Source: Obrimoposthia wandeli (lineage: Eukaryota). Taken from it: a stretch of 64,000 bases of DNA. Below are positions 6,339 through 51,074 of the stretch, piece after piece. The position numbers were made by a program, and so were the translations under genes. The number at the start of each line of letters is the position of its first letter. Positions within the stretch are counted from its first letter, which is position 1. Location: contig CDROCS010005499.1 of NCBI GenBank assembly GCA_977020255.1, positions 62,001 to 126,000 of the forward strand, in the 5' to 3' direction. The notes beneath the pieces were generated by a model, which worked only from the letters and a program-made list of their open reading frames with translations, did not search any database and was not told where the DNA came from.

Positions 6339-6408
6339 GCATCCATTCTTTGCTTGGTATTGCTTTACATTTCAAACGGGGAACGACTTATAATGTCGTT
6401 TCTGCCAC

Positions 6409-6761: not shown

Positions 6762-6816
6762 GCCATTCGAATCACACAAAATAGACGTTAAGTGATTCTA
6801 ATGGCGTCAGGGTATT

Positions 6817-9067: not shown

Positions 9068-9209
9068 ACATTGCTATGGCCCTGCTGCTCGTTCACCTCA
9101 TCACCGAATAAGAACAACGTAATGGGATAGTAAATCATGGCATTAAATGTGGCGTAGATCACAAATTAATTGTATGATGAATCTGTTATTAGGCGTATTT
9201 GAAGGGTTT

Positions 9210-9548
9210 ATGAAATACATTCGCTCATTCGCGATCATCTTTGCTTGTCTTTTTCTCGGTAAAGGCATTCAAGCGTTAACGGGAGTCGCTATTCCCGGCA
9301 GCATTATTGGCATGCTGATTCTTTTCGCCGTACTTTCTATGGGGCTAATTCCCTCGCATTGGGCTAAAGATGGTTGCCACCTTCTTATTCGTCACATGGC
9401 GCTGTTATTTGTGCCTGTCGGCGTAGGGCTTATGGATTACCTCGATCTTATCAGTGCAAATACCCTACCTATTTTACTTAGTACGTTAGGCAGTAGCTTG
9501 GTTGTATTAATTGTTATTGGTGTTGCTACGCACCATAAGGAAAAATAA
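9210..9548 (+). CDS. yohJ: CidA/LrgA family holin-like protein
   Basis: PGSIIGMLILF...LLFVPVGVGLM; start moved to ATG 9210. Confidence 0.9.
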   Translation: MKYIRSFAIIFACLFLGKGIQALTGVAIPGSIIGMLILFAVLSMGLIPSHWAKDGCHLLIRHMALLFVPVGVGLMDYLDLISANTLPILLSTLGSSLVVLIVIGVATHHKEK

Positions 9549-10231: not shown

Positions 10232-10318
10232 AAAATAATAGGTAAAAAGCTGCAAGGTGCATGCAATCGTGTACATTTGTAAGTCATTGATAAATGGTTA
10301 TGTGATTTTTAAAATACG

Positions 10319-10383
10319 TGTGACGCCACTCGCATTAATGTATGGAGTGAAACAAGACTTGCTACATTGTGATCAAGATCACA
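10319..10383 (+). promoter_or_regulatory. Tandem CRP sites upstream of cdd (CytR/CRP-type promoter)
   Basis: TGTGA-N6-TCGCA at 10319-10334 and a perfect TGTGA-N6-TCACA at 10368-10383. Confidence 0.65.
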
Positions 10384-10442
10384 CAGAATTTAAAATTGCT
10401 CGCCTACAATGTTTCTCCATCAACTAAACGGAGTAACACCTC

Positions 10443-11330
10443 ATGCATGCTAAGATCATGGATGCTTTAGGTTCCTTACCCTCTGATCTTGCATCAGCGG
10501 TAAAGCCTATATTTGAAGATGCTAATTTTGATGCAACAATAAGTCCCGAACAATTCACCACATTGCTTTCAAAAACCCAAATGACAGACAGTGAATTACG
10601 CGTTGCCCTTCTTCCTATTGCTGCTGCTTACTCCGTTGCTCCTATTTCTAAATTCTTTGTCGGTGCCATTGTTCGTGGTGAATCTGGTCGTTTGTACTTC
10701 GGTGCAAACATGGAATTTGTCGGCGCATCGCTTTCTCAAACTATTCATGCTGAACAATCTGCTATTAGCCATGCGTGGATAAAAGGCGAAACGGGCATTA
10801 GTGATATTACAATTAACTACAGCCCATGCGGTCACTGTCGCCAGTTCATGAACGAACTAACCACGGCACAGACGTTAGTTGTTCAATTGCCTGAACGTGA
10901 AGAACAAACCTTACAACAGTATTTACCTGAATCGTTTGGCCCTGCTGATCTGAATATTACCGATGCACTGCTAGGTAAAATTGACCACGGTATGACGATT
11001 AAAGAAACAGACGAGTTTGTTGCCATAGCTTGTAAAGCGGCGAATGGTTCACACGCGCCTTACACCAAAAATTACAGCGGCGTGGCATTGAAAGCGACTG
11101 ACGGTAAAGTGTTCATCGGTAAGTATGCTGAAAATGCAGCCTTCAACCCTAGCCTTCCGCCATTACAAGTTGCCTTGGTTAATATGAATATGGCGGGTTA
11201 TGCGTTAGCTGATATTGCAGAAGCGGCATTAGTTGAAAAAGCAGACAGTACCATCAGCCATCTTGCAGATACACAAACAACACTTGAAGCATTGAACCCT
11301 GATATTCCCCTTACTTATGTAGCGGCATAG
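10443..11330 (+). CDS. cdd: Cytidine deaminase
   Basis: HAEQ...PCGHCRQF zinc motif; ENAAFNPS. Confidence 0.97.
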
Positions 11331-11383
11331 TATCTCTACCCACCCGCATCTGATGGGTAGTGTTCATTGTAAGCACAACGAAG

Positions 11384-11406
11384 AAGCCGCTTTTAGCGGT
11401 TTTTTT
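11384..11406 (+). terminator. Rho-independent terminator after cdd
   Basis: AAGCCGC-TTTTA-GCGGTT followed by a T-run. Confidence 0.7.
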
Positions 11407-11500
11407 CGTTTAGAATCAGAGCCAATCAACTCGCTGCTGTACCAATCATAAGGAGTTCGGAGTATTATCCGACTTCATTATTCTTATTAGTCTCATTTCC

Positions 11501-12379
11501 ATGTCTCACAAACATAATCCAATTCAAGGTGCGAGCTGGATGCTAACCGCTGGTTTAGCGTTTGCACTTGTAAATAGTTTGGCACAGTATTTAAGCGTTA
11601 AACTGCATTTACCCTCAACCACTGTCGGTTTTATCCAATATTTCATTGCTTTAATTGCAATGCTTCCTTGGTTAAAAAGTTTGGGGTTACGACACGCTTT
11701 ACGTACCGAGCATTTCGGACAGCATTGTTTTCGGGTTTTCCTATCGGTTATCGGTATTCAGTTGTGGCTGTGGGCTCTCGCTTATCCTGTGCCTATTTGG
11801 CAAGGTATCGCATTATTGATGACATCACCGTTGTTCGCCACTATTGGCTCTGGTTTATTCCTAAAAGAAAAAGTCGGTACAGCACGTTGGGTGGCAACAT
11901 TAGCGGGCTTTATTGGTGCGATGATCATTCTAGAACCTTGGGGAGATACCTTTAATTGGGCGTCGCTATTACCTATAGGTGCCGCTTTCTTTTGGGCAAG
12001 CTATTCACTCATGGTGAAGAAATTATCAGTTTATGATTCACCGACTACGATGGTGGTTTATCTTTTAATTTTGATAACCCCATTTAATCTATTTTTGGCT
12101 CTACCGACATTCACCGTTCCCGATCAAAACATCACTTGGGTATTACTTGCGGCAGCTGGCTTATTAACAGCATTGGCACAGTGGGCAATCGCGAAGTCTT
12201 ATGCTGCTGCTGATGCCTCTTTTGTTCAGCCTTTTGATCATGCCAAATTACCCCTTAACGTATTAGCTGGCTGGGTAGTATTTGGCTGGGCACCACCCGG
12301 TCGTTTATGGTTAGGGGCTGCCATTATTATCGCTTCTGTTGCCTTTATTACGCATTGGGAAAATCGTAAAAAACGATAA
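11501..12379 (+). CDS. ribN: DMT/EamA transporter, RibN riboflavin importer-like
   Basis: 10-TM DMT. LWALAYPVPIWQGIALLMTSPLF and QPFDHAKLP resemble Vibrio RibN as I recall it. Confidence 0.65.
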   Translation: MSHKHNPIQGASWMLTAGLAFALVNSLAQYLSVKLHLPSTTVGFIQYFIALIAMLPWLKSLGLRHALRTEHFGQHCFRVFLSVIGIQLWLWALAYPVPIWQGIALLMTSPLFATIGSGLFLKEKVGTARWVATLAGFIGAMIILEPWGDTFNWASLLPIGAAFFWASYSLMVKKLSVYDSPTTMVVYLLILITPFNLFLALPTFTVPDQNITWVLLAAAGLLTALAQWAIAKSYAAADASFVQPFDHAKLPLNVLAGWVVFGWAPPGRLWLGAAIIIASVAFITHWENRKKR

Positions 12380-12722
12380 CTTAACATCCGCCACCACGAC
12401 AATAACGTCTAATACCCCTGCTATCATTCTCGTATTTTATTATTTGATACGGAAATTGATAACAGGGGCGTTATCCGAACTTACCTTTTGTACCCAAACG
12501 GCTATAACTATTCTGCTTTACCAAACTACCTCATCTCACTATTCTGCTTTCTTTCTACGTTCTCTCTGCTTTTCTCTACCGACTATCATCTCTATAACGC
12601 CTCATCCCTGACACATCGAATTAGAAAGTACTGTCTATACTGTTCAGAACACATTTTTATAACCACATTCACGATATTGCAGTTAAATGCTTTTCTACAC
12701 CTTTTGATTCAAGGAAAAGAGA

Positions 12723-13694
12723 ATGAAACGTATATCTCTTCGCTCAGTTCTAGTTGGTTTTATTTCATTAGTTGTATCGCTTACCGCGCATGCAGAACAG
12801 TTCATTACTATTGGTACAGGCGGCGTTACAGGCGTGTATTACCCAACAGGCGGTGCAATCTGCCGGCTGGTGAATAAAGACCGTAAAACCCACGGTATAC
12901 GCTGCTCTGTCGAAAGTACGGGGGGCTCTATTTATAACATCAATACTATTCGAGCCGGTGAACTTGATTTAGCCATCGCGCAATCAGATTGGCAATATCA
13001 TGCGTATAACGGCACAAGCCTATTTGAAGAAAAAGGGCCATTTAAGTCATTACGTTCAGTCTTTTCTCTTCATGCTGAACCTTTTACTGTTGTCGCTAGA
13101 GCTGACTCAGGCATTAAGACCTTCGATGATTTGAAAGGAAAGCGCGTCAATATTGGTAACCCTGGTTCGGGGCAACGAGGCACAATGGAAGTCTTAATGA
13201 AAGCCAAGGGCTGGACAATGAAAGACTTTAAATTAGTGTCTGAATTAAAAGCATCTGAACAATCAAAAGCATTATGTGATAACAAAATCGATGCCATGAT
13301 TTACACCGTAGGGCACCCTAGCGGCGCGATTAAAGAAGCCACAACATCTTGCAGCAGTGTGATTGTTGAAGTTGCAGGGCCTGTCATCGATAAGTTAGTA
13401 GCTGAAAATGCGTTCTATCGTATTGTTACCATTCCTGGCGGCATGTACGTAGGCTCAGAAAATGGCGTGAAAACATTTGGTGTCGGCGCGACTTTCGTGA
13501 GTTCAACTCAAGTCGATAACAATGTGATTTATGCGGTTACACAGTCTGTATTTGATAATTTCAATGAGTTTAAAAGATTACATCCGGCTTTTAGTGGCTT
13601 GAAAAAAGAAGAAATGATTAAAGATGGATTAACAGCACCACTGCACGATGGGGCTAAAAAATACTATATCGAAGTTGGTTTACTCGCAAAATAG
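12723..13694 (+). CDS. TAXI family TRAP transporter substrate-binding protein
   Basis: ITIGTGGVTGVYYPTGGAIC, ESTGGSIYN, GKRVNIGNPGSG. Confidence 0.93.
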   Translation: MKRISLRSVLVGFISLVVSLTAHAEQFITIGTGGVTGVYYPTGGAICRLVNKDRKTHGIRCSVESTGGSIYNINTIRAGELDLAIAQSDWQYHAYNGTSLFEEKGPFKSLRSVFSLHAEPFTVVARADSGIKTFDDLKGKRVNIGNPGSGQRGTMEVLMKAKGWTMKDFKLVSELKASEQSKALCDNKIDAMIYTVGHPSGAIKEATTSCSSVIVEVAGPVIDKLVAENAFYRIVTIPGGMYVGSENGVKTFGVGATFVSSTQVDNNVIYAVTQSVFDNFNEFKRLHPAFSGLKKEEMIKDGLTAPLHDGAKKYYIEVGLLAK

Positions 13695-13732
13695 TAAGCT
13701 GAATGATTGGTAATAAATAACGTTCATTAAAC

Positions 13733-13770
13733 AAAAAGGGCTAACCATACATTATCGGTTAGCCCTTTTT
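13733..13770. terminator. Bidirectional terminator
   Basis: AAAAAGGGCTAACC...GGTTAGCCCTTTTT between convergent genes. Confidence 0.75.
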
Positions 13771-13848
13771 AGAATACCAATCTAAACAAATCTCTCGATC
13801 ATTTACTTATCCAAAATGGTATAAATCTGCACTTCGTTTTAAATTGAT

Positions 13849-14253
13849 TTAAAAACGGACACGAAAACCAAGCGCTGCTTCTAATTCCAAGTCTACATCC
13901 TCAACAACATAAAGTGTTGGGCCTAACTCACCGTAGAACTCAAAACTATTCACTGGTAGCTCAAAGCCAACACCTGAACGCACACCCACTTTATCGTGTT
14001 TGTTATCGACGTATTGTGCACCAACAAAAGTATATAAATTGTTTAAATCTGAATTTTTTGACAAAGAACCAAGGTTGAAGGTTTTATCAACTGCCAGCCC
14101 GAAGTCATCAATGCCAAGCGAAAAACGCAAATCGTTATGCTTATATTGAATACCTGACATTGGGCTACCCAAAAAGACACCAATGGCTTGTGCCGCATGG
14201 GCTGAAAATGGAACAACAAAAAATAGTGCTAACCCTAAGAAATACTTTTTCAT
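13849..14253 (-). CDS. Small outer-membrane beta-barrel-like protein
   Basis: Signal peptide; amphipathic strands; C-terminal GFRVRF. Confidence 0.6.
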   Translation of the reverse strand: MKKYFLGLALFFVVPFSAHAAQAIGVFLGSPMSGIQYKHNDLRFSLGIDDFGLAVDKTFNLGSLSKNSDLNNLYTFVGAQYVDNKHDKVGVRSGVGFELPVNSFEFYGELGPTLYVVEDVDLELEAALGFRVRF

Positions 14254-14593
14254 TTTGTACTGCCTACTTTGTTTGATAGAACAACTAAAATCGCAACGCG
14301 GTTGTTGCTATAAGTAAAACCGAATAATTCATATTAGTTACATTGTCACTTGTGTGTAGGTGTATACACCCCTACTGGCCTCTAATGGGCGGAAGTAATC
14401 TAACCAAAAAGTTCCCTAAACACGATGCTTCAAACGAGAACTGACACAACATTGACAGGAACATGCATTTATCAATACGTTAAGTGCATTTTTACTTCAT
14501 CATTCACTCTTAATTCATACTTAACCCAATACAACATTGTATTTTTATTATCCATTGCGTTCTAACCGTTCAAAATATCAACGAAAACAACAA

Positions 14594-14609
14594 AAGCAAA
14601 CGTTTGCGC
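14594..14609 (+). promoter_or_regulatory. PurR box
   Basis: AAGCAAACGTTTGCGC, about 58 bp upstream of purT. Confidence 0.8.
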
Positions 14610-14666
14610 CACTATTAAAATCAGTTATCATTTACGCAGTATCATCACTCATCGTAAGGAAATTCA

Positions 14667-15842
14667 ATGTTTGGTTCAGCAACGCGTTCTGATGCAACCC
14701 GTGTACTACTTCTTGGTTCTGGTGAATTAGGCAAGGAAGTGGCGATTGAATGTCAGCGTTTAGGTTTAGAGGTTATCGCCGTTGATCGCTATGACAATGC
14801 ACCAGCAATGCAAGTTGCTCATCGTAGCCATGTTATCGACATGCTGGATGGCGATGCACTTAGAAAATTAATTGAATTAGAGCAACCACACTACGTTGTT
14901 CCTGAAATTGAAGCCATTGCTACAGATACCTTAGTCTCGCTTGAAGCTGAAGGGGTGAATATTGTTCCTACGGCAAATGCGACTAAGCTAACCATGAACC
15001 GCGAAGGCATTCGTCGTTTAGCGGCTGAAGACTTACAGATTCCGACCTCTCCTTTTGAATTCGCCGATCAATACGATGATTTTGTCGCAGCAGTAGAACG
15101 CGTGGGTACACCGTGTGTTGTTAAACCTATTATGAGTTCTTCAGGTAAAGGACAGAGTGTGATTAAAACACCTGCCGATATCGAAGCATCGTGGCAGTAC
15201 GCACAAGAAGGCGGCCGTGCGGGTACTGGTCGCGTTGTGGTTGAAGGCTTTATTAAGTTCGATTACGAAATCACACTGCTTACAATACGCGCTGTCGATG
15301 GCGTGCATTTCTGCGCCCCAATTGGTCACCGCCAAGAAGAGGGTGATTACCGTGAATCATGGCAGCCACAACAGATGTCTGATGAAGCACTAAAAGCTGC
15401 GCAAGAGGTTGCTGAAAAAGTGGTTAACGCACTGGGTGGTTATGGGTTATTCGGCGTAGAGCTCTTTGTACGAGGAAATGAAGTGCTGTTCAATGAAGTA
15501 TCACCTCGCCCGCATGATACGGGTATGGTTACCTTGATTTCTCAAGACCTGTCTGAATTTGCATTACACGTTCGTGCCTTTTTAGGCCTGCCTATTAAAC
15601 AAATCATTCAGTATGGCCCAGCGGCTTCTGCTGTTATTTTAGGTAACGGTATTTCAAGCAATATTCGCTTCGATAATTTAACCGCCACGCTATCTCGTCC
15701 ACAGACTCAGGTACGTCTGTTTGGCAAGCCAGAGATTAATGGACGCCGTCGCCTTGGTGTTACGTTAACGCGCCGTGAGGATACCAAACAGGCTGTTTCT
15801 GATGCTATCGCGGCAGCAGCAGACGTTAAAATCATTTACTAA
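14667..15842 (+). CDS. purT: Formate-dependent GAR transformylase
   Basis: [39 protein letters not shown]. Confidence 0.97.
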
Positions 15843-39607: not shown

Positions 39608-40093
39608 CTAATTACTGCTTTCAACGACGATATCAGCTTTGGTTGAACCAATAATTTCAAGTAGCTCTTGAGATTCCTTTGCCGGAACCTTATGCTTTGC
39701 GAGTACTTCCTTAAAAAGAACAACCATGCGATCCCACTCCGGTTCAGTGATATTCAAATTCGCATGTGCTTCTTTCATCCCTTTTCCTTGATACTCACAA
39801 GGGCCACCCGTCGCAATACACACCATAGACGTTACACGATATTTCAAATATGCAGCTGGCACATGTGCCCTTGTGGCTTGAACTGCTGGATTTTTATTAA
39901 GAAAAGTATCGGGCACTACGACGTCTATAAAGTCACTAACGACTACAGATATCGGCGCTAGCCCTCCCAAGCGGCTATATAACGAAGATGTATCTGATTT
40001 AGTATTGCTTTCAGCAGAAACTGAACCAATTACCAAAAACGATGTTAAAACAAAAATAAGCACTACTTTTAGGTTATGCACACTCTTAATCAT
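39608..40093 (-). CDS. Group 1 truncated hemoglobin with signal peptide
   Basis: LYSRLGG, TGGPCEYQG, proximal MKEAH, LNIT; N-terminal hydrophobic leader; RBS AGAGGA before ATG 40093. Confidence 0.88.
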   Translation of the reverse strand: MIKSVHNLKVVLIFVLTSFLVIGSVSAESNTKSDTSSLYSRLGGLAPISVVVSDFIDVVVPDTFLNKNPAVQATRAHVPAAYLKYRVTSMVCIATGGPCEYQGKGMKEAHANLNITEPEWDRMVVLFKEVLAKHKVPAKESQELLEIIGSTKADIVVESSN

Positions 40094-40353
40094 AATGATT
40101 TCCTCTGTGACCAAATTTACAACAGGGTCAAGAAGATCATAGTTCACGTTATGGTTTATTTCAGCGAGCGGTTCTTTCACATCAGATTCAATGAATAAAT
40201 CCAGCAATTTAGATCTGGGTACATATGCCCCCCCCCCTTCTATAGATTAATTTGAAGTATGAGTAAAGGAGGTTCGCAGCTGATTGTAGCCTCCTCTACC
40301 TCACCTTGCTAACAAACAAAGACAAAATAGAAGAGACAACATATAAGCTATGT

Positions 40354-40980
40354 TTATGATTCTTTCGCCACAGGTGCAGTAACTTCAGACAACGTATTTA
40401 CTTGGTTTTCCAGTTCTTTTGTTGTCTTCTGACTCATGAATTCTTTGTATAAAGCTGCTTTATCAGTCGGGTCAATCACAGTGTTAGTTTCAACCATGTT
40501 ATTGAACAACTTCTCACTTTCCATTTTAGGCATGGTTACCAATGCACACACCTGATCAATACCAGAAATTTGCACTAACGCGATCTGCTCTACTTGGCTT
40601 TTTTGCAAAGACACGCTTGTGATCTGTTTCGCTATTTGTTCAAACGACGTACCTGTTGTAGACACACCTGCCGCTGAATCCATCTTCTGGTATGTTTTTT
40701 CTAATACGTTAGCTTTCAAATCCATATTTTGAGCCAATGTATTACGTGTTAGAGACACGACGTGATTACGGTCAACCGAGAAATTCCCAGATGCTGTAAC
40801 ACAGTTCGAAGCAGCAAAACCATTTGCGGATGATGGATTAAACACCCACGCAGGCATTGCCTGTGAGCTGTTTGCTGATGGCACATTGGTCTCTGGCTGT
40901 TGAGTAACCTGAGCTGACTCTGAAGCACAACCTGTTAAAACTACGGCTAGAATCGCAGCTGATAATATTTTTTTATTCAT
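40354..40980 (-). CDS. LPP20-like lipoprotein
   Basis: Lipobox LTGC; PAWV...A...R..LA pattern. Confidence 0.7.
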   Translation of the reverse strand: MNKKILSAAILAVVLTGCASESAQVTQQPETNVPSANSSQAMPAWVFNPSSANGFAASNCVTASGNFSVDRNHVVSLTRNTLAQNMDLKANVLEKTYQKMDSAAGVSTTGTSFEQIAKQITSVSLQKSQVEQIALVQISGIDQVCALVTMPKMESEKLFNNMVETNTVIDPTDKAALYKEFMSQKTTKELENQVNTLSEVTAPVAKES

Positions 40981-40992
40981 TATGTGGCCTTA

Positions 40993-42324
40993 TTAAATCA
41001 TTGTATAAGTTTGATGCTGCTGATAGCTCTGCATTACTTTGTTTACTTTTTTCAGATAATTACGTGTTTCTTTATACGGTAAATTTGCAAGTAAATGCTT
41101 ATAAACCTGCTCTGAGCTCATCGTATTTATTTTCTTTACGGCTGCTCTTACACTTCTTTCACCAAATGCTTTCGCAACATTGCCAGAGCCCGTGTTGTAA
41201 GCTGCGATAATGGCATATATCGCACTCTGTGGATTGTCGATACCGCGTAAATAACGACTTTCCAATATTTTTAGATAAGCCGTTCCCGTTTCAATATTAA
41301 TTTTAGGGTTATAAAGCTCATTTTCTTTCATTGGCTTATCTTTACCACGATAAAGCTTATTAACATCATGCCCTGCTGTAGTCGGCACAATTTGCATCAA
41401 GCCATAAGCTGGTACATGTGATTTTGCTTTCGGGTTAAAGTGCGATTCCGTGTGCATAATCGCTAATACCAGTGGAGCAGGTAATTCACGCTTTTCACTT
41501 TCTGCATAAATATAAGGCATGTAATTCTGAGCACGCTTTGATATAGCGGTACTTGGGATTTTGGTTTTATATTCAACGATTTGCGCAGAAGAACGCTGGA
41601 ATTTCACTTCAGATTGATTAAAGTTTTGCTCAATTTTAGCTAATCGTTTCGCTTCATTCGCCTTCATGATCTTCTTTTGATCTTCTAGCAATTCCGCTTT
41701 TTGCTTTTCAGCTAACAATTGCTGTGAGTCTTGCTCAACATATATATCAAGCTGACTCATCTGCCGATCTGTCTGTGCTTTTATTTCTTGCTTAACCTTA
41801 GCCAACTCATTTTGATCTAATTCTATATCTTTAACTTCAACCTGCTGCGGGGTCGCCTTTACAGGTTCTGTAATGCCGACATCTTGCCAAAGTTGGTTAT
41901 TTTTTTCTATTACTTGATTAATGATGACCAATTCAGCAGCTGTTTGCTGTGATGTTTTTGAGGTCGCAATCTCTGATTGCGGCAGTTTATAATTAATTGT
42001 AATTTCGCCGTTTTCGAGATCAATAACCGTGCGCGATGCATTCTTCGTATCGTAAACGACAATCACATCTTGCGAATCGGTTTTGGCATCTCCCCAATCA
42101 TTTAAAGCGTCTTCCTTTTGCTTATCCCACTCTTGCAAATAAGCCATTTGCCACTGATTAAATTCTTTAATATGGTTGGCATACCACTGAGTAAACTCTT
42201 CTGTGTGGTCGGCCGTTAATTGCCCTACTTCTTGATCCAATTCAGCAAAAGGATCATTAGCATGAACATTACCCATTAAAAAAACATTGATAGCGACAGC
42301 CAATACACCATGTCTAAATTTCAT
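40993..42324 (-). CDS. Lytic transglycosylase (SLT/MltC-like) with long helical N-terminus
   Basis: IMHTESHFNP (catalytic Glu), AYGLMQ, AAYNTG, ETRNYL; signal peptide; RBS AAGGA. Confidence 0.9.
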   Translation of the reverse strand: MKFRHGVLAVAINVFLMGNVHANDPFAELDQEVGQLTADHTEEFTQWYANHIKEFNQWQMAYLQEWDKQKEDALNDWGDAKTDSQDVIVVYDTKNASRTVIDLENGEITINYKLPQSEIATSKTSQQTAAELVIINQVIEKNNQLWQDVGITEPVKATPQQVEVKDIELDQNELAKVKQEIKAQTDRQMSQLDIYVEQDSQQLLAEKQKAELLEDQKKIMKANEAKRLAKIEQNFNQSEVKFQRSSAQIVEYKTKIPSTAISKRAQNYMPYIYAESEKRELPAPLVLAIMHTESHFNPKAKSHVPAYGLMQIVPTTAGHDVNKLYRGKDKPMKENELYNPKINIETGTAYLKILESRYLRGIDNPQSAIYAIIAAYNTGSGNVAKAFGERSVRAAVKKINTMSSEQVYKHLLANLPYKETRNYLKKVNKVMQSYQQHQTYTMI

Positions 42325-42349
42325 AAATAGGGATTTCCTTATAGAGAGA

Positions 42350-43114
42350 CTAGAAATATGACGATAAATCACCAGCAGAATCTTGTTCTTGCTCTGCTAT
42401 CATATCTTCAAGTTGTATTAAGAGTTGTTGGCACGCAGAACTTTGGCACTGTTTAGCAATTGATATACTCTGTGATAGATCAATATCTTGCTGCCATTGC
42501 GCTAGCCACAATTTGATGCTGTCATTCTTCACCGCTGCGACATCAACATAATGCTCGAAATATGCTTGTGCTTTCTTTATGTCTTGTTGACTGAGTAGCA
42601 ACGTCACTAATCCCGCCCCATCCATTGCGATGGCAGGCTGTTTCATTACGTAAGGTAGCATTTGTTTTAGTGCATCATATTGCTTGGTCGTGTAGTACGC
42701 GACGGCATAGCTTAATGCCGTTGTTTTCAAGTTCGTTACTTTCCCACTATCGGTAAGTGTGGCAGAACAAGTGGCAGAGGTACGGCTTACATCGGAATAG
42801 CGAATATCTGCTAATTCATACTTCAAGTTGGTAAGAGGCCAGCTAGAAAAACGTTCGTTTATCACACCTTTTACAATCAACTTATCTTCGTATTCTGCTC
42901 GTAACGGTAAACCCAACCCCTTTCTGCATAGGGATTTTATCTGGTTTGTTGATAATTCCGAGGTTCTTACAGTATCTACCGTATAATTCGATGAATGCCC
43001 TTGTACCGTATAGGTGGTACCGGCAAACTCCCAAATTACCGCCTCATTAGCCATTGCTGGCAGGCTAAATACGCCTGCCAGCAATAATGCTCTGTAATTA
43101 CAGATCATTGACAT
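42350..43114 (-). CDS. Exported hypothetical protein, helical/TPR-like C-terminus
   Basis: Signal peptide ending AMA-NE. Confidence 0.7.
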   Translation of the reverse strand: MSMICNYRALLLAGVFSLPAMANEAVIWEFAGTTYTVQGHSSNYTVDTVRTSELSTNQIKSLCRKGLGLPLRAEYEDKLIVKGVINERFSSWPLTNLKYELADIRYSDVSRTSATCSATLTDSGKVTNLKTTALSYAVAYYTTKQYDALKQMLPYVMKQPAIAMDGAGLVTLLLSQQDIKKAQAYFEHYVDVAAVKNDSIKLWLAQWQQDIDLSQSISIAKQCQSSACQQLLIQLEDMIAEQEQDSAGDLSSYF

Positions 43115-44399
43115 TGCTTACCTGCCCAGATGGGCCTTGCGTATTGCTACCACTTTCAGTCAAGCCACCTGTAGTGCCAACTTTGTGGTTTGTACCTGCA
43201 GTTTTACCTTCACGTACACGTTGCTTATTTTCTGCTGCAGCTTGCTTTGCGGCAGATTCAAGTGATGGTGCATAAACCGCAACAGCAAGCATCCAATCAC
43301 CGTCGCTACTCTTGAACGTTTTAACCGATACGCCCGGTGGCACTTTACCTGCCGCAAATGACTTGTAAGACTCGGCATGTTTCATGTTATTCATGAAAGT
43401 ATGCTTATCTTCAGCCAATGCAGTTGCATCTGCCGGATCGATACTATCTTCTGGGTAAGAGAACTGTTCGTTCTTCTCTAGCTGGTTTTCGCTAAAGCCT
43501 CCTTCCCAGTACACTTCTTCACCCTGCATCACAGAGATCAAACCGTTACGTGCTTTTGCCTGTGCCTGAGACTTAGACATCGACACTAACTTACGCTGAA
43601 CACTTTTGTTCTTGTTATCACGAATGATAGATGAGCCAAAACCAAGCACAAATGATTCGCCACTGTCAGGGTTCGTGATAACTTTAGCCCCAACAGGTGG
43701 CATTACACCCGACTGCAAATCTGCAATAATTTGCTTAAAAATAGCATTGGGTTCAGTTGTTTGCGTTAAAGCACCGACTTTACGCTTAGTTTGCTCTCGT
43801 GTTTTTGGTGTAGAGATCAAGCTAACACGAACTAATTTCTCTGCAGGATCATCATATACATCAAACGTAACATAACCTGCCAAAGCACCTTTTACTGACT
43901 CTGCACAAGTATCGCTTGTCATAGCTGTGGTGTTAGCCACGCTGTCTGTCGCGGTATCAATGGCATCCATTGTTTCATTAATAGCCGTTGCACACATGTT
44001 GCTCATGCCTTCCATGTTTTCGACCAATTGCTTTTTCGCAATCTGGAAGGCTTTCATGTATGCAGCACGTTTTGAGAGTAAGGTTGCATTACGGTTTTCG
44101 TACGTTTCATAACTACCAGAACCGGTTGATAAGATTCCGACACCAGAACTCACCGCGATCATTTTTACGCCATCACCCTCATCTTCCATCAGGCTTTGGT
44201 GAGCGACCAAGACTGCCGCTTTCGGGTCATCTGCAATAATAAGACCGTCTACTTCTTTTACAGCTGTTGTATCAATAGCTTGAGATTCTTCCGCTGAGGC
44301 GGTTGCAGGAACCAGATCATTAAGATCAAAATCAACGCCTGCGTGAGCAGCACTAAAGGTTGTTGCCAGCACTAGTGCCAACAATGTTTTCTTAAACAT
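43098..44399 (-). CDS. Exported protein with two LPP20-like repeats
   Basis: Signal peptide AHA-GV; GSGSY...AYMKAFQIAKKQL and GFGSS...AQAKARNGL repeats; Gly/Ser/Thr tail. Confidence 0.65.
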   Translation of the reverse strand: MFKKTLLALVLATTFSAAHAGVDFDLNDLVPATASAEESQAIDTTAVKEVDGLIIADDPKAAVLVAHQSLMEDEGDGVKMIAVSSGVGILSTGSGSYETYENRNATLLSKRAAYMKAFQIAKKQLVENMEGMSNMCATAINETMDAIDTATDSVANTTAMTSDTCAESVKGALAGYVTFDVYDDPAEKLVRVSLISTPKTREQTKRKVGALTQTTEPNAIFKQIIADLQSGVMPPVGAKVITNPDSGESFVLGFGSSIIRDNKNKSVQRKLVSMSKSQAQAKARNGLISVMQGEEVYWEGGFSENQLEKNEQFSYPEDSIDPADATALAEDKHTFMNNMKHAESYKSFAAGKVPPGVSVKTFKSSDGDWMLAVAVYAPSLESAAKQAAAENKQRVREGKTAGTNHKVGTTGGLTESGSNTQGPSGQVSNVNDL

Positions 44400-44413
44400 G
44401 GTAAATCCTATTT

Positions 44414-45811
44414 TTAAAGTACGTTGATCTGAAATTCATTCAGAACGTTAAGCGTTGAGCTGTATTTAGGCTGATGAATTCTTAGTGTGGGTTCAATGTA
44501 TTGAGCAAGATCATTAGCATTATTTAACGACCGCAACTGAACCACGACTTTGTCAGACTTTTTCGTTATTTTGATATCTGACACACCATTAATTGCACTG
44601 AGCAAGGTGAATAACTGCCCTTGCTGACCAGCGGCACGTTTAGAGAAAATAATTTCTCTAACAGGCCCACCACGCATCGCCATTTTTTGTGCAGAAGCAT
44701 GCAGCTGAGACTTAATCGCTTGCTGGTTACTCTCGACAGCAAGGTGAACCGCTGCCAGTTGATTCAACATTCCAGCTTTGTTCGGCAATGTCATGAAGGT
44801 CGGATCATTTCGCCACGTACCGTATTGGTTACCAGCGCGATCGCGAACCACAGCAATAAGTTCAAGCTGAAGACCAGACGGTGTCACTTTTTGGGTTTCT
44901 TTCACATCAATAATGATGCTTGATTGCGCAGGGTACTGTGATAAGTCAAAGCCCATGTTTGCAAGAGCTTCAGCAAACGAGCTTTTCACTACAGGTAGTT
45001 GTGCATTGATATATACCGAGGGTTGCCCAAGGCTTTTGATCAATTGAGCGACTTTGTCTTCCATCTTCTGCCGCTCGACAGTGATATCCAAAGTGACCGC
45101 AAACAGACCGTTATCTAACTGTGTATTGGATATCTCATTCCAGCTTGAGATCATACCTTGAGATTGCAACGATAACGATTGGCGAGTAACTTCTTCTAAA
45201 TTAAAGTCGTCACTGTTTGTGCTCGCCGACATATTAGAATATGCCTGCTGCAAATAACCTGACTTCACCATTACGCCGAGGGCTTGGCTAACTGCACGGC
45301 GAAAAGCGTCTTGCTCTGCTGCCTGACGCGCACTTAAGCCTGATTTGCTATCACTTTTCCCTTCACCGATTACAACCAATGAGATAGTAGGTGAATCTGC
45401 CCAATCGATACCATCATCACCATTTGATAATTCTGATGCGGGAGGCTGAAGCCGAACCGTAACACAGGTATCATCGCCTTGAATTTCTGGCTGACCAAAA
45501 TCAGCACGAACATTACCTTGTGCAATGCCAGAAATAAGTAAATCACGCGTTTCTTGATTGAACTGCTCATCAAGTAAAAGAGAATCATCTGTCGTTAATG
45601 AAACCGAGACCTCTCCCTGTAAAAATAGCCGAAGGTTGTTTAAACCTTCAGCTTTAGCAGCCTCTATTGCTAGTGCCCCGCGTCCATACGCACAGCCTTG
45701 TTCAGAAAGAGCCAGCGTCTGCTGGCTCTTATCAAGTTCCAATGCGGAAGACGACAAGCATACAAATAAGGTACTTAGGGCAATGCCTTGAGTTAACCTT
45801 TTTGTGCCCAT
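44414..45811 (-). CDS. Exported protein with FlgT-N/LPP20-like domains
   Basis: Signal peptide; VIGEG...ARQAAEQDAFRRAVSQALGVMVKS...GMI...VTLDITV. Confidence 0.65.
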   Translation of the reverse strand: MGTKRLTQGIALSTLFVCLSSSALELDKSQQTLALSEQGCAYGRGALAIEAAKAEGLNNLRLFLQGEVSVSLTTDDSLLLDEQFNQETRDLLISGIAQGNVRADFGQPEIQGDDTCVTVRLQPPASELSNGDDGIDWADSPTISLVVIGEGKSDSKSGLSARQAAEQDAFRRAVSQALGVMVKSGYLQQAYSNMSASTNSDDFNLEEVTRQSLSLQSQGMISSWNEISNTQLDNGLFAVTLDITVERQKMEDKVAQLIKSLGQPSVYINAQLPVVKSSFAEALANMGFDLSQYPAQSSIIIDVKETQKVTPSGLQLELIAVVRDRAGNQYGTWRNDPTFMTLPNKAGMLNQLAAVHLAVESNQQAIKSQLHASAQKMAMRGGPVREIIFSKRAAGQQGQLFTLLSAINGVSDIKITKKSDKVVVQLRSLNNANDLAQYIEPTLRIHQPKYSSTLNVLNEFQINVL

Positions 45812-46971
45812 GTGCTTCGTTCCTTCATGAATTCCATTGGAACACCCACGCTAACAGCAAAGATGCGACGTTGGCGATCAGGGCGGTAAATACCAGCTTC
45901 TGCTTCATCTTTAACTTGATCAGCTAACTGGCTATTCTTCCAACGCACAATTTTACCTTGTGCACTCTGCTGGCTAGGGTTTACCGTTGCGACACCAATT
46001 GGCTCCACAAAACCAGCACTGTATTCAAATACCACCATGGTTTCATTCGGCAATACACCGGCATTTTGGCCGCGATCTAATGAAATACGGTCGCCTTTAA
46101 TGCCCATAACTTGTGCGGTGGCTGGCATTTCTTTCAGCAAACGCGTCAGCATAATATCAAAGCCACGAGAAGACATTTCATTCAACACGGCATCAACGTC
46201 TTTACCACTGGTGTAATTAAAACCACGGTAATAATCACCGTTAGCAATCACTGTGGTGTAACTTTCTTTATCGCGCACATCGAAATTAGATACACGGATC
46301 TTGCCGATATTTGGGTAACTCAGCTTTTCACGTGTGTATGGGTCTATTACACCCGTCGTCATTTCAATTGATGTTTGAAAAAGCGACTGTGTTGAACCAA
46401 ACAGCATGTCACCCGTTTTTAATACATCCACTTTCATGATGTAATCGGTAGACAACTTACTACGGTTACCTGCTTTCTTAGCTACGTTAACTGCGCCTTC
46501 ATCTGCCAGAATTTCTTCCATTGCAGCATTCACAGACTGCGTATCACGCGTCACAATTCGGAATCGGTTTACACCTGCAAACTGGTTTTCAAGCGTGTTT
46601 TCCAATGCTTTCGTCTGAAATTTACCAATATTAGAATGCATTGCATTAAAGACATCTGCAGATTGGCCTTTAAGCGTTGAGCTAACGTCGGTTTGCACAT
46701 CACCAAAATAAAGACGGATAGTCTTTTTAGCTAATGGGCAGCGTTGATCTTTTTCATCCGCCTCATAAGAGCAAAACTGTAGCCCCTGCGTATTAAAATA
46801 CGCTGGAACTTCAATATCTTCGTTCTTAAAATCATGAGCTGATTTGCCAATAATTAACGAAGAGTTACCAGCATTACTCTCTACAGCATAAGTTTGGTTA
46901 CTTTTGCTACTCTGACACCCAGCGAGAGCCAAACTCACTGCCACTAAGCCAGCAATTTGAGAAAACTTCAT
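45793..46971 (-). CDS. Lipoprotein with CsgG/FlgT-M-like and FlgT-C-like domains
   Basis: Lipobox LAGC; LENQFAGVNRFRIVTR; C-terminal AQVMGIKGDRISLDRGQNAGV...MVVF. Confidence 0.65.
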   Translation of the reverse strand: MKFSQIAGLVAVSLALAGCQSSKSNQTYAVESNAGNSSLIIGKSAHDFKNEDIEVPAYFNTQGLQFCSYEADEKDQRCPLAKKTIRLYFGDVQTDVSSTLKGQSADVFNAMHSNIGKFQTKALENTLENQFAGVNRFRIVTRDTQSVNAAMEEILADEGAVNVAKKAGNRSKLSTDYIMKVDVLKTGDMLFGSTQSLFQTSIEMTTGVIDPYTREKLSYPNIGKIRVSNFDVRDKESYTTVIANGDYYRGFNYTSGKDVDAVLNEMSSRGFDIMLTRLLKEMPATAQVMGIKGDRISLDRGQNAGVLPNETMVVFEYSAGFVEPIGVATVNPSQQSAQGKIVRWKNSQLADQVKDEAEAGIYRPDRQRRIFAVSVGVPMEFMKERSTWAQKG

Positions 46972-47687
46972 TATGATTTCACTTTCTCTGCTAGTACTTT
47001 ATCTAGGTTCTCTAATTGTTCAATTGTATTTTTATCCATAGAAATTAGAGTATTAGCATCATAAGCTAGCAGAGAACGTGCTTCTAATTCGTTGTAAGCT
47101 TCAACAACAGGCACTGTTTCTTCCTCTTCGCCTTCTTCTTTTGATTCGTTTGATGCAGCCGTAAGTAAGTTACCTAGGCCAGCCATTCCTGATTCTTGTG
47201 CAATAGCTACCGCATTTTGCGATGCAATAAAGGCAATTTCAGCTGCTTGCGTAGCAATATCTGTCGCTAACTTAACGTTCTTCTTGAAAATAGCGTCAGA
47301 AGCATTTTTGTATGCTTCAACTTGTGGGAGAATTTTCTTGCTTTCAGGTTTACCTTCGTCGAATTCATTCATTGCAACAAGCAGCTCTTCATCAGACTTG
47401 TCTGCATTTACTGCCAAGAATCCAGCAACATCGCCATGCTTAGAAGTTAAAGTACGGTAGTCGCCAAATACAGAACACTGACGTTCCTGAATTGAAACCA
47501 TCATTTTAGATGCTTTATCAACTGCGTAAGAAACAGCAGTGTAATCAGAACCTAGTTCCGTACAGTTCTGCGTCAATGACTTGCTCATTTCTGCACGGTC
47601 AACGGTTGCTGATTCCATACCAGGTATTGATGAACAACCAGCCAATACTGATACTACAAAACCGGCCATAACTGTTTTCTTAAGCAT
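46971..47687 (-). CDS. Helical lipoprotein of unknown function
   Basis: Lipobox LAGC; its stop overlaps the next start (TAATG). Confidence 0.75.
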   Translation of the reverse strand: MLKKTVMAGFVVSVLAGCSSIPGMESATVDRAEMSKSLTQNCTELGSDYTAVSYAVDKASKMMVSIQERQCSVFGDYRTLTSKHGDVAGFLAVNADKSDEELLVAMNEFDEGKPESKKILPQVEAYKNASDAIFKKNVKLATDIATQAAEIAFIASQNAVAIAQESGMAGLGNLLTAASNESKEEGEEEETVPVVEAYNELEARSLLAYDANTLISMDKNTIEQLENLDKVLAEKVKS

Positions 47688-47698
47688 TTTTTTGTCCT

Positions 47699-48613
47699 TT
47701 AATCTAACAATGAGTAAATAGAATGAGTTTTTAATGTTGTCATTATTTTTTGACGTGCCTTTTCTAAAGCACTATCGATACTGTTCGGGGATCTAGCCAT
47801 TTCCGACAGCTGTTTCTGAGCCACCACAACTCCTAGGTTGTTGGCTTCAAAAATTTGTAATACTACAGTTTGCTTAGCAACATAGTGGTTACCCTGCTTC
47901 CCTTTCTGCATATTCGCTTTAATGTAAACGGTGATATTTCCAGTCGAAGATGCTGCTTTTGACGCAGACAGCAAAGATTTCACTTCTGACGAAAAGCGAT
48001 CTGATGATGAACGAAAGGAAATCTGAATTTTGTTTTCATATTGAGTCGTTTGGCGCAATAACGTTGCTTGTTTATCTTCTTGTAAAACCAATTCATCTGC
48101 ACTTAGTGACGATAATATTATTAAAGATTGTTCACTTTTAAGCAGTATCGTTTTTATTGTTTCGAATCGTTTAAGATCGCGCCACTGCAGCCCTGCAGCA
48201 CTTAAATAATCAGACACGATGTCATGGGATTCAACGACCTCTCGCTTAAGAGAGGCAATCCATTTAGTTCTATTAATTTTAAATTGATACTGACACGAAG
48301 AATATTCACAAGTGACGCTGTTTATTTCCATACTTTGAATTTCAATCGGTAATGTCGTTATCTTCGATTGTAATTCATAGGAGGTATTAATATCGCCATT
48401 CACTTTAGACTGAATATTCTTTTCTTTCACATCAACTTTGCTATAAATACGCAATGCTAATTGTTGTTTAGCGTCTATTGCTGCTTGTTGCTCTGTTTCA
48501 CCATAACCATCGATATAAAGATATGATTCAGCATTAACTGCGCTAGACATACAAAGCAGACACAAAATCTTGAGAAAATGAGAAAATGACGAAAGAGCTA
48601 ACTTCACAAACAA
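47699..48613 (-). CDS. Exported LPP20-like protein, first gene of the operon
   Basis: Signal peptide VNA-ES; IDGYGETEQQAAIDAKQQLALRI. Confidence 0.7.
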   Translation of the reverse strand: MFVKLALSSFSHFLKILCLLCMSSAVNAESYLYIDGYGETEQQAAIDAKQQLALRIYSKVDVKEKNIQSKVNGDINTSYELQSKITTLPIEIQSMEINSVTCEYSSCQYQFKINRTKWIASLKREVVESHDIVSDYLSAAGLQWRDLKRFETIKTILLKSEQSLIILSSLSADELVLQEDKQATLLRQTTQYENKIQISFRSSSDRFSSEVKSLLSASKAASSTGNITVYIKANMQKGKQGNHYVAKQTVVLQIFEANNLGVVVAQKQLSEMARSPNSIDSALEKARQKIMTTLKTHSIYSLLD

Positions 48614-49421
48614 TTCACCAATACAAAAGAGAGGCTGAATCTACCGAATAAATTTTATTTGTTCAATCAATCAATTAGCACATTTAACGCCATGGAGTGC
48701 ATATATATTCACGGCAATGAATGGAAAAGTGTGATTTCTTTCCAGAAAATAAGTATGCAACATAATTTGACAGCTGCCATATAAGAGCACTTAACTACTT
48801 TACCACTCGACATTCACTTACCGTCAATATATTGGCGAAGTGATTGTATTCAGAATCAAGAATAAAACAAGTTTTTGTATGCAATTACTTTCTTTATACT
48901 TTTGTGATCTAAGGCATATAATAAAAAATAGATATTTATTTTTACGTATGAAAAACACACAAGAAGTTAATTTAAATATATTTACAACATTCACCCACCT
49001 TGAAATAAATAAAACACCCAACAATTAAAGATACCTAATAAGGATATGCTCATTAAAGGAAGCGGCATTAAAATCATAAACAGAAAGCGCAGGCTCTCTT
49101 AGAAGTCGCTTACATGTTATCGAATTATAAACTTTAGTATTGACGCTGTTCTCTGCTTAAATTCGATCATGTGTATACAGCACATTCCCCCCCCGCCATT
49201 TGCCAATGAAAGTTATTGAAATTCTTGCGGGCAGAATCAACAAAAGTATTTCTGATTACCACGATGACTCAGCTTACAAGATAAAGATCAAAGTTGGGCA
49301 TAGCGGTCGAGAAAATAAAAAAATAGCGCCAATAAAGCTACCTATAGACGCTACCTATAGATGTAGCCGTTATTTAATGACTTATTTATCGTTTTGATTA
49401 TTTATAGTCGCTTGGGGATAA

Positions 49422-49904
49422 TTATATTTCAGATTTATAAACCACATGAAATTGCTCTAAAACTAGCATCATATCTTCACTTGGTTCGATATTAAGCTCT
49501 ACACATTCTTGTGCGAAGAAATCCCAATGGGCTGTTCGCCACCATTCTAATGAACGATCACCTTCACCTTCCATATATGCAAAATCTGCTGAAACATCGC
49601 AATATTTACATTCATCAACCGAATCAATTTCAACGATACAAATAGGCTTACCATTCCAATCGGTGACGACAAGCAGGTGACCAATTACTGGCATTGGTTC
49701 ATAATCAGATTTGTACCAATATTGAAGGCTACAGGTTGCTGTCTTTTGACCAAAACGTATCAGTTCAGCACATAAATTAGCATTATGTTCATCTGCACAA
49801 AAATAGTCTGCGCTAAATGATTGATATTTTTTACGCTCGGAATCACTTAGCGATTCAAGATATTGATTTAAATAAATTTTTGATTTTTCTTCCATGATAT
49901 CCAC
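49422..49904 (-). CDS. ASCH domain protein
   Basis: LIRFGQKTATCS, DFAYMEGEGDRSLEWWRTAH. Confidence 0.9.
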   Translation of the reverse strand: MDIMEEKSKIYLNQYLESLSDSERKKYQSFSADYFCADEHNANLCAELIRFGQKTATCSLQYWYKSDYEPMPVIGHLLVVTDWNGKPICIVEIDSVDECKYCDVSADFAYMEGEGDRSLEWWRTAHWDFFAQECVELNIEPSEDMMLVLEQFHVVYKSEI

Positions 49905-50210
49905 TAAATTATTCTTCCAATATAACGTCTACAATAAATAACACTATTTTACGTCACACTTTGAATTCCATTCATACTCACCATTACACTCCAATTACTA
50001 TGGAGTACTTACGATTAATCCCGAACAGAAACTTCGTAAAAAGCACTTTATAACAAAATCTTAGTTACCTAAAGTCATAAAGTGAACGCCTCAAAGCCAT
50101 TGACCTTTATTCACGTGCGATGCGTTGGCTTAACGACACTTATCCTTATCTGTTAGCTATGTTGTGCATTAATAACTATTATTTGATGAAAAAACATCAG
50201 GTTAATGCTA

Positions 50211-50491
50211 TATACCCAAGCTACCTCAAGATGCAGGATTCAGAGTGACTCAGCGTGTTTAATTCAAGGAAAATGTGTGTAGGAATGGCTTTCCGCTGGA
50301 GTAATACAATAAGTGCAACACATTTGACACAGAAGTAGATACGCTGAATCACTCCCGAAGGGCGAGTTTTGTTGGGCTCTATGCGGTGTTACTTATTTTC
50401 AACGTAGAACGACTAGGTTTATAAATAAGTGCCTTGCCTAGAGCCCAACAAATTCTCGCTGAAACGAGCATCTTGAGGTAACTTGGGTATA
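50211..50491. repeat. ERIC-like miniature inverted-repeat element (281 bp)
   Basis: 24-bp terminal IRs TATACCCAAGCTACCTCAAGATGC / GCATCTTGAGGTAACTTGGGTATA (23/24 match); two internal long hairpins. Confidence 0.8.
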
Positions 50492-50588
50492 GAGGTGAAA
50501 TATCATGTTAATTGATCTAGATCATTACCACAACGACCAGTCAACGCTATGTTGATACTGTGTTAAAACAAATTAGAGAGGTAATCGT

Positions 50589-50771
50589 ATGAAATTAATA
50601 CAAGACCCGAAATGTTACACAGATGTTTGTGTGAATGGGAAGTGGTTTCACCACGATCACTGCACTACTATTGCCTATATGCTAAAAGGTGGAGCTTCTT
50701 CCAATATTGAACTAGCTAAAATGCCAGCAACAGAAAATGAGTTAGTTGCTCTATTAACTGAAATCTTATAA
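50589..50771 (+). CDS. Small hypothetical protein
   Basis: 60 aa; strong RBS GAGAGG. Confidence 0.7.
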   Translation: MKLIQDPKCYTDVCVNGKWFHHDHCTTIAYMLKGGASSNIELAKMPATENELVALLTEIL

Positions 50772-50853
50772 TGCCTATAGAAAGCCGCTTGTTGCGGCTT
50801 AGTTTCTCCATATTCAACGACGCTGACACGAAGTATTCTCGACAAGCTGAACG

Positions 50854-50937
50854 GGAGTGTTTCATTTCTGTGTTCAAGACCCTGATATTGAAGGTCTAGC
50901 TGAAAAAATTGTTGCGACGGGGGTAAAATTCGTATGA
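50854..50937 (+). pseudogene. Fragment of a VOC/glyoxalase-family gene
   Basis: Isolated GVFHFCVQDPDIEGLAEKIVATG with no start or upstream domain. Confidence 0.5.
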
Positions 50938-51074
50938 ATTGACATACTCTGACGGCGCTTACAAGTAGCGTCCAACGATAATGAGGTAGTTCAAAACTAC
51001 CTTATCAAGTACAGCGAATCATACAAGAAATGAATCCCTCCTGCGGCAAAGAACATCAAACCTTTAGATAAACA

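Follow-up and report, generated by a model that had tools for sequence, protein, structure and literature searches.

An operon of eight genes, here named g1 to g8, lies on the minus strand at positions 40354-48613 of a 64,000 nt window, the whole stretch of DNA that was analysed (contig CDROCS010005499.1, deposited under Obrimoposthia wandeli), and all coordinates given below are those of this window. Judged from its sequence, the window DNA comes from a marine Photobacterium that has P. frigidiphilum and P. profundum as near relatives, with the g3 protein 99% identical to the P. frigidiphilum copy and 97% identical to the P. profundum copy. The open reading frames (ORFs) were taken from a program-made list. 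A sequence-only reading of the locus had described eight co-oriented and tightly packed genes, and this description holds, as eight minus-strand ORFs follow one another with gaps or overlaps of no more than 23 nt (+11, -1, -19, +14, -17, -23 and +12 nt from g1 to g8). Orthologues of g7 begin at Met17 of the window copy (42324), which is the probable true start of the gene, and with this start the overlap between g6 and g7 turns into a 25-nt gap. The genes and the region upstream of them are listed in Table 1.

Table 1. Genes of the operon and the adjoining upstream region, with window coordinates and predicted properties.
Feature	Position	Strand	Length	Description
g1	47699-48613	minus	304 aa	ORF; predicted secreted, signal peptidase I type; HP1454-like: N-terminal Lpp20/SHS2 domain, helical middle, alpha/beta C-terminal part
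g2	46971-47687	minus	238 aa	ORF; predicted small outer-membrane lipoprotein (LAGC); always adjoins g3
g3	45793-46971	minus	392 aa	ORF; predicted FlgT-like outer-membrane lipoprotein (LAGC); CsgG/LpoB/TolB-N-type alpha/beta domain and C-terminal beta-barrel domain
g4	44414-45811	minus	465 aa	ORF; predicted soluble periplasmic, FlgT-like; two N-terminal SHS2 (Lpp20/FlgP/FlgT-N type) domains, then alpha/beta domains
g5	43098-44399	minus	433 aa	ORF; predicted periplasmic, highly conserved; Gly/Ser/Asn-rich C-terminal tail ending DL
g6	42350-43114	minus	254 aa	ORF; predicted periplasmic; four invariant cysteines; conserved C-terminal ...DDLSSYF
g7	40993-42372	minus	459 aa	ORF; MltC-like family-1 lytic transglycosylase (putative), signal peptidase I type signal
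g8	40354-40980	minus	208 aa	ORF; predicted Lpp20-family outer-membrane lipoprotein (LTGC)
Upstream non-coding region	48614-49421	minus	808 bp	33% GC; presumed promoter/regulatory region

Export signals had been proposed for all eight products, and when these were read directly from the translations every N-terminus was found to be signal-like, with a charged segment followed by a hydrophobic stretch. The three lipoboxes were likewise confirmed (LAGC in g2, LAGC in g3 and LTGC in g8); the next residues are Ser, Gln and Ala respectively, and since there is no Asp at +2, the sorting rule of E. coli would make g2, g3 and g8 outer-membrane lipoproteins. Cysteine pairs are invariant in the g3, g4, g5, g6 and g8 families, which fits with an oxidising periplasmic location.

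AlphaFold2 models were made for g3 and g4 and compared with the PDB by Foldseek. The g3 model, built on a 51-sequence alignment, has a pLDDT of 89.3 and a pTM of 0.84, and its best PDB match is FlgT, as seen in the cryo-EM structure of the Vibrio LPHT-ring (8z5n_0, E 3.4e-11 over 317 columns) and in the FlgT crystal structure (3w1e, 1.7e-10). Matches to CsgG follow at ~1e-4, and then those to HpaA, GNA1162, LptE and PelC. FlgT is also the best match of the g4 model (pLDDT 80.5), with 3w1e at 1.6e-6 over 402 columns and 8z5n_0 at 6.8e-6, and below it stand LptE/TolB-N-type lipoproteins and, at 0.0067, HP1454 of Helicobacter pylori.

Family models of FlgT gave no match with window g3 or g4 at E 0.1, and FlgT_N was matched weakly by 3 of the 27 members of the g4 family. 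Among the remote g4-like proteins from the metagenome clusters described below, which are linked to g4 by hhalign at 99.7%, six of nine match Pfam FlgT_N (best 4e-9). Their profile matches chains 9hmf_C (the top match, labelled 'Lipoprotein, putative'), 9yds and 8z5n_2, in a list that includes named FlgP chains. An insert of ~37 residues (~184-220) is present in the second SHS2 domain of g4, and the remote g4 alignment runs ungapped through the insert region of 9hmf_C; this domain belongs to the FlgT_N/FlgP SHS2 family. Profile searches of the PDB with the g3, g4 and g2 families found no relative, and a profile of the remote g3 relatives retrieved lipoprotein signal peptides as its sole PDB matches. 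Given the unrelated neighbours of the operon, both in the window and in other genomes, and the lipobox of g3, we regard g3 and g4 as FlgT-like paralogues and not as FlgT itself. True orthologues of FlgT, FlgP or FlgO were considered and rejected, as the genetic context is wrong and the family models are unmatched, and no FlgO, MotX or MotY homologue was detected among the operon proteins.

The distribution of the operon was determined by a scan of one genome per species (185,579 species), which returned 68 loci, and gene order was compared by tblastn, ORF maps and hhalign. The gene set is present in most of the 68 species genomes. All eight families, with a swap of g1 and g2 as the sole change of order, occur in Vibrionaceae, Shewanellaceae, Colwelliaceae, Pseudoalteromonadaceae, Idiomarinaceae, Alteromonadaceae and Thiopseudomonas, so that the gene order is conserved across many genera, and many of the carriers are marine bacteria; conservation in at least 60 genomes rules out that the ORFs arose by chance. 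Reduced loci have the orders g1-g2-g3-g4, g7-g1-g2-g3-g4-g8, g1-g2-g3-g4-Lpp20-g7 and g2-g3. In these variants g2-g3 is always kept and g4 nearly always, several are without g7, and g5 and g6 are gained or lost only together. Across the families conservation falls in the order g3 > g5 > g2 > g4 > g8 > g7 > g6 > g1. None of the 191 close relatives of g3, the most conserved gene, has a functional name or a Pfam domain, and g3 forms only 64 clusters at 50% identity among 1.84 billion representative proteins. One of the loci, in a metagenome-assembled genome (MAG) labelled Polaribacter (L028), agrees in gene layout with that of a MAG labelled Colwellia (L024), and the two g3 sequences are identical; the assignment of L028 to Bacteroidota probably reflects a binning error rather than the presence of the operon in another phylum.

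More distant clusters were found by a metagenome scan seeded with six of the closer remote sequences. In these a g2-like lipoprotein is followed by a g3-like lipoprotein of ~345 aa and then by a g4-like protein (E 1e-16 to 1e-20), the g4-like gene standing directly after the g3-like gene or with one or two genes between. This arrangement is present in most of the longer metagenome contigs inspected (sediment, freshwater, marine and gut), as well as in Endozoicomonas acroporae and Desulfobaculum bizertense. The g2 family has no Pfam or PDB relative; it is linked by hhalign (95.4%, E 1.8e-8) to the lipoprotein of ~205 aa that precedes the remote g3 homologues in the metagenomes, and in Desulfobaculum and Endozoicomonas the g2 position is held by an unannotated gene for 190-199 aa, a candidate g2 counterpart by its position. 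Recurrence in reduced loci, metagenomes and distant genomes indicates that the g2-g3-g4 triad is the old core of the operon. Its recurrent partners are Lpp20-type proteins and a transglycosylase: the remote cluster L089 also encodes two Lpp20-type lipoproteins, an enzyme with Mltc_N and SLT domains, a TPR protein and an ankyrin-caspase lipoprotein. No link was found by hhalign between g5 or g6 and the remote-cluster genes that stand between g3 and g4, termed X (~460 aa, TPR repeats) and Y (~570 aa). In metagenome contigs L083 and L089 (~3900-15800) a lipoprotein with an Lpp20-like N-terminus and a DUF4384 domain was seen, together with a lipoprotein that combines ankyrin repeats with a caspase domain (Peptidase_C14); the latter hints at proteolytic processing in some variants.

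The cluster has moved between families. In the g3 tree three Shewanella species and Aliagarivorans fall inside the Vibrionaceae clade, Thiopseudomonas and Wenzhouxiangella fall among the Idiomarinaceae, and the flanks of the operon are unrelated to it and differ between genera; nesting and flanks together indicate transfer of the module. The sequence-only reading had suggested a regulated and horizontally acquired unit. A long AT-rich upstream region is present, and transfer is seen elsewhere in the tree, but acquisition is not supported by composition in the window. The operon has a GC content of 41.4% against 39.7% in the rest of the window, its GC3 is typical, and its location is common to the window, P. 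profundum and P. frigidiphilum. A compositional island or recent acquisition in this genome was accordingly rejected. Within the genus, g5 of P. frigidiphilum (L015:12573-13874) is 77% identical to window g5 and that of P. profundum 98%, whereas the rest of the P. frigidiphilum operon is 95-99% identical to the window, with g1 at 82%; a divergent g5 in an otherwise near-identical operon looks like a recombination mosaic.

The first and last genes of the operon encode proteins of the Lpp20 type. Pfam LPP20 (PF02169) is matched by 18 of 28 members of the g1 family (best 2.5e-9), and the family profile matches HP1454 (4kzs) at 6.1e-18. In the g8 family 12 of 23 members match Pfam LPP20 (best 2.4e-5), the profile matches H. 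pylori Lpp20 (5ok8) at 1.8e-5 along almost the entire length, and a Marinobacter lipoprotein in the g8-equivalent position (L051) scores 33.1 bits with Pfam LPP20, above threshold. The two families are linked by hhalign at 97.3%. Window g1 and g8 alone do not reach E 0.1 for LPP20, so membership rests on the family profiles. The fastest-evolving member of the operon is g1, at 33-42% identity to Vibrio and Shewanella copies; the gene of ~300 aa that g2 and g3 flank in loci of the Alteromonadales type is homologous to it (99.7%, E 5e-26). At least four proteins of the LPP20/FlgT-N type had been predicted; of these g1 and g8 are solid by their profiles and g4 is good by Foldseek and by FlgT_N in its remote relatives, while g5 is weak.

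The weak case, g5, has a highly conserved family (64% mean column identity). Window g5 scores 16.6 bits with Pfam LPP20 (E 0.011) against a cut-off of 25.9 bits, 5 of 18 family members match it (best 0.0055), and in hhalign comparisons g5 reaches 44% with the first SHS2 domain of remote g4 and less than 13% with g8. None of 183 g5 homologues has a functional name; some in UniRef are labelled 'Curli production assembly/transport component' or 'SPOR domain-containing protein', labels that lack Pfam or profile backing. Profile searches of the PDB found no relative of g5 or g6, and g6 is also without a Pfam relative. Both proteins have conserved C-termini: that of g5 (43098-43170) is rich in Gly, Ser, Asn and Gln, and that of g6 (42350-42385), which reads GDLSSYF in the window copy, has an aromatic end reminiscent of the ends of outer-membrane proteins. 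Short acidic motifs directly after the signal peptides are common to g5 and g7 (DFDLxDLVPA and NDPFAELDQ).

The SLT enzyme proposed earlier was confirmed, as g7 matches Pfam SLT at 5.8e-29 and its catalytic motifs are intact (HTES 307, GLMQ 324 and AYNTG 391, with catalytic Glu309). By these motifs g7 is an MltC-like family-1 lytic transglycosylase that is apparently active. Its alignment with MltC covers the SLT domain and the last part of the N-terminal domain, and the catalytic Glu-Ser is kept. In other respects g7 differs from MltC, in having no lipobox, in its score with the NCBIfam MltC model (177 bits, under the equivalog cut-off of 375 bits), and in a long, acidic and coiled N-terminal region that includes the conserved NDPFAELDQ motif. 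Dedicated transglycosylases are encoded alongside flagella and secretion systems, and g7 is likewise encoded inside the operon for what is proposed below to be an envelope assembly.

No flagellar, pilin or inner-membrane machinery gene is present in the operon or among the ten large ORFs within ~6 kb on each side, in agreement with what had been read from the operon alone. One flank holds ABC-F ATPase, GST, GNAT, CopD, EamA transporter and globin genes, and the other holds genes with ASCH, DUF1971, DUF3465 and SnoaL domains; none of the flank genes in the window is related to secretion. The sole ATPase gene near the operon is the unrelated ABC-F gene, ~4 kb away. The globin gene (39608-40207, minus strand) encodes a bacterial-type (truncated) globin (Pfam Bac_globin 1.3e-8) and lies 146 bp downstream of g8 on the same strand, with no terminator-like site found between the two. 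The N-terminus of this globin resembles a signal peptide (MIKSVHNLKVVLIFVLTSFLVIGSVSAES), which suggests that it may be exported. The DUF1971 gene is the immediate upstream neighbour of the operon's regulatory region in P. profundum and P. frigidiphilum; in the window ~1.6 kb (49422-51074), including the ASCH-domain gene (49422-49904), separates the two.

Within the upstream region ~620 bp are conserved in three Photobacterium species nearly to the degree of coding sequence, with long invariant AT-rich blocks. The region has no Rfam match, and promoter and terminator scans gave no excess over shuffles. Scans for sigma-54 and sigma-28 consensus sequences returned chance-level counts, with no match upstream on the operon strand.

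Existing annotation does not assign the operon to a known system. An exact-sequence look-up of the eight proteins gave no match, and in direct Pfam and NCBIfam scans g7 alone was recognised, with sub-threshold matches to LPP20 (g5) and LpoB (g3). Public entries are 'hypothetical' save for generic LPP20 and murein transglycosylase labels; in the RefSeq entry for the Pseudoalteromonas copy, six products are hypothetical, one is an 'LPP20 family lipoprotein' and one a 'murein transglycosylase domain-containing protein'. In the literature no description was found of the cluster, or of 'FlgT-like' or 'LPP20-like' systems. The gene set, its context and the core triad are undescribed, and the fold families of the recognised parts are known.

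The closest known assembly is the H-ring of Vibrio. The FlgT ring of V. cholerae has 26 subunits, FlgP and FlgO, both lipidated, make up rings of 58 subunits beneath the outer membrane, and C-terminal loops plug into the neighbouring ring (bioRxiv 10.64898/2025.12.02.691832). One SHS2-type fold is common to FlgP, Lpp20 and FlgT, and those that form rings have an insert after a helix (PMC12222027). Likeness to the H-ring is seen in g3 and g4, for which FlgT is the best structural match, and in the operon parts, which would be periplasmic and lipid-anchored to the outer membrane as FlgP and FlgO are. The differences are that the operon is outside any flagellar locus and patchy in distribution; that there are two FlgT-like paralogues, of which g3 is itself predicted to be lipidated and g4 has an extra N-terminal SHS2 domain; and that a dedicated transglycosylase and three families without known relatives (g2, g5 and g6) are also part of the operon. 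The Campylobacter basal disk (FlgP and FlgQ) is also made of SHS2/Lpp20-family domains, and FlgQ resembles two FlgP repeats much as g4 has two such domains.

The lpp20 operon of H. pylori (HP1454, HP1456/Lpp20 and HP1457) offers the second comparison. Its products HP1454 and Lpp20, which bind FlgP and FapH (PMC11756786), are the matches of g1 and g8 respectively, each operon has one secreted and one lipidated member of this type, and the function of the H. pylori proteins is unassigned. In its published form, however, the H. pylori operon includes neither FlgT-like genes nor a transglycosylase gene, and the Lpp20-type genes here are peripheral to the g2-g3-g4 core.

With the FlgT-, Lpp20- and CsgG-type fold likeness, the conserved gene order and the lack of a known-system annotation, an outer-membrane/periplasmic assembly encoded apart from flagellar genes stays the best reading of the locus. 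Specifically, the operon may encode an outer-membrane-anchored periplasmic scaffold of H-ring/Lpp20-type parts with its own cell-wall-cutting enzyme, to which we give a probability of roughly 0.45. The term envelope-spanning, which had been used at first, is dropped, as there is no inner-membrane or cytoplasmic component in the operon.

From the exported status, the fold relationships and the conservation of the proteins we infer each step of the assembly as follows. All eight proteins would cross the inner membrane by Sec, and g2, g3 and g8 would be lipidated and sorted to the outer membrane. The ancient core would consist of g2 and two FlgT-like proteins, the lipidated g3 and the soluble g4; these three may form oligomers under the outer membrane, much as FlgT does within the H-ring, and the HP1454-like g1 and Lpp20-like g8 could decorate or extend this core at the membrane. 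The pair g5 and g6 would be an add-on module, whose conserved C-terminal tails could dock into neighbouring subunits in the manner of the FlgP and FlgO C-terminal loops of the H-ring, and g7 would open the peptidoglycan locally and so accommodate the assembly. The output is likely to be mechanical or organisational, the outer membrane being stabilised, spaced or tethered, or provided with a docking platform, and transport seems less likely.

Several observations weigh against such a scaffold. FlgT rings assemble on the flagellar LP-ring, and no template is evident for the operon. Foldseek probabilities for g3 and g4 with FlgT are 1.0 but the global TM-scores are 0.17-0.26, so that the likeness holds per domain and the arrangement of domains is unlike that of FlgT. 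For the insert in the second SHS2 domain, the g4 model shows helices of low confidence (pLDDT 48-69). In type g1 and g8 resemble HP1454 and Lpp20, whose insert is helical, and not FlgP with its ring-forming beta-hairpin; g2, g5 and g6 are without a recognisable fold. Deletion of H. pylori lpp20 (hp1456) alters neither the envelope barrier nor the motor (PMC11756786).

A more far-reaching version of the scaffold reading is less likely than not, though a serious candidate: that the triad and its add-ons build an unseen, flagellum-independent structure beneath the outer membrane, horizontally mobile and distributed from Vibrionaceae to Desulfovibrionales, which would represent either the non-flagellar stock of the FlgT and FlgP rings or a secondary release from the flagellum.

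Of the other explanations, the one that fares best, though we think it unlikely, returns the products to the flagellum, as rings or disks accessory to the polar flagellar motor that would form an extra, remotely encoded outer layer of the H-ring and give stability to the outer membrane where it surrounds a fast motor driven by sodium. The carrier taxa are mostly polar-flagellated. All recognisable structural relatives of the operon proteins are associated with motors (FlgT and FlgP, with HP1454 and Lpp20 as binders of FlgP and FapH; PMC11756786), and the in-situ structure from V. cholerae has unassigned peripheral H-ring densities (bioRxiv 10.64898/2025.12.02.691832). Against this, the distribution is patchy, with V. 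cholerae, V. alginolyticus and V. parahaemolyticus not among the 68 loci, and no flagellar gene is near the operon in the window or at other loci. The upstream region is also without a sigma-54 or sigma-28-like promoter, the cluster moves between families as a self-contained module, and the unchanged motor of the H. pylori hp1456 mutant argues in the same direction.

It is improbable, in our judgement, that g3 is a CsgG-like outer-membrane channel in a curli-like secretion or assembly system that exports one of its own products, such as g5, while the remaining proteins serve as periplasmic adaptors. The earlier claim of one CsgG-like protein fits at the level of the fold: in the model the alpha/beta fold of the g3 middle domain is that of CsgG, and both would be outer-membrane lipoproteins. 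Remote relatives of g3 exceed the Pfam thresholds for CsgG (P0142, 35.2 bits against a cut-off of 20.8 bits) and for LpoB (31.8 bits) and are named CsgG by JGI, and the curli labels of some g5 homologues and the Gly/Ser/Asn/Gln-rich tail of g5 point the same way. FlgT is nevertheless by far the better match of the modelled g3, which adds an FlgT-like C-terminal barrel domain to the shared fold. The strands at 177-190 and 196-209 of the g3 model are part of the core sheet and long, free amphipathic membrane hairpins are not predicted, in an AlphaFold2 monomer that cannot exclude conformational change. Window g3 has no Pfam CsgG match and window g5 no CsgG score, the g5 profile reaches less than 4% probability against the CsgG-positive g3 relatives, and Pfam and NCBIfam scans of the operon found no curlin-like repeat protein, CsgE or CsgF match. 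With no substrate-like gene either, the export channel that had been suggested is not retained.

Equally hard to favour is a cell-wall remodelling module, in which LpoB-like lipoproteins would regulate peptidoglycan enzymes with g7 as the effector, for example during stress, cold or high-pressure growth. The dedicated and apparently active transglycosylase, its presence or absence among the reduced variants, and the LpoB matches, weak in window g3 and above threshold in its remote relatives, are what such a module would have in its favour. The LpoB resemblance, however, is to a fold common to CsgG, TolB-N, LptE and FlgT-M, and window g3 reaches only 16.2 bits with NCBIfam TIGR02722, far under the cut-off of 110.55, and 13.1 bits with Pfam LpoB (cut-off 22.3), so that it matches neither LpoB model above its cut-off. 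Six structural genes are also out of proportion for one enzyme, and several variants lack g7 altogether. A defence system, finally, was rejected, as none of the eight proteins matched the PADLOC anti-phage models.

The outer rings of high-torque flagellar motors (FlgT, FlgP and FlgO) are a textbook case of a machine that gains parts, and the source of these parts is unknown. FlgT-like and Lpp20-like proteins also occur, as described here, in a self-contained, conserved and mobile set with a cell-wall enzyme and away from flagellar genes, and with such a non-flagellar set the origin and the ancestral role of the ring parts become testable. The g2, g5 and g6 families fill an annotation hole in marine Gammaproteobacteria. 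V. natriegens, which is non-pathogenic, fast-growing and genetically easy, has a g5 homologue that is 83% identical (g5 being the only gene looked at there) and may serve as a practical test system. The operon also provides a lead on Lpp20 and HP1454 of H. pylori, whose relatives here are part of a much larger operon built around a conserved core.

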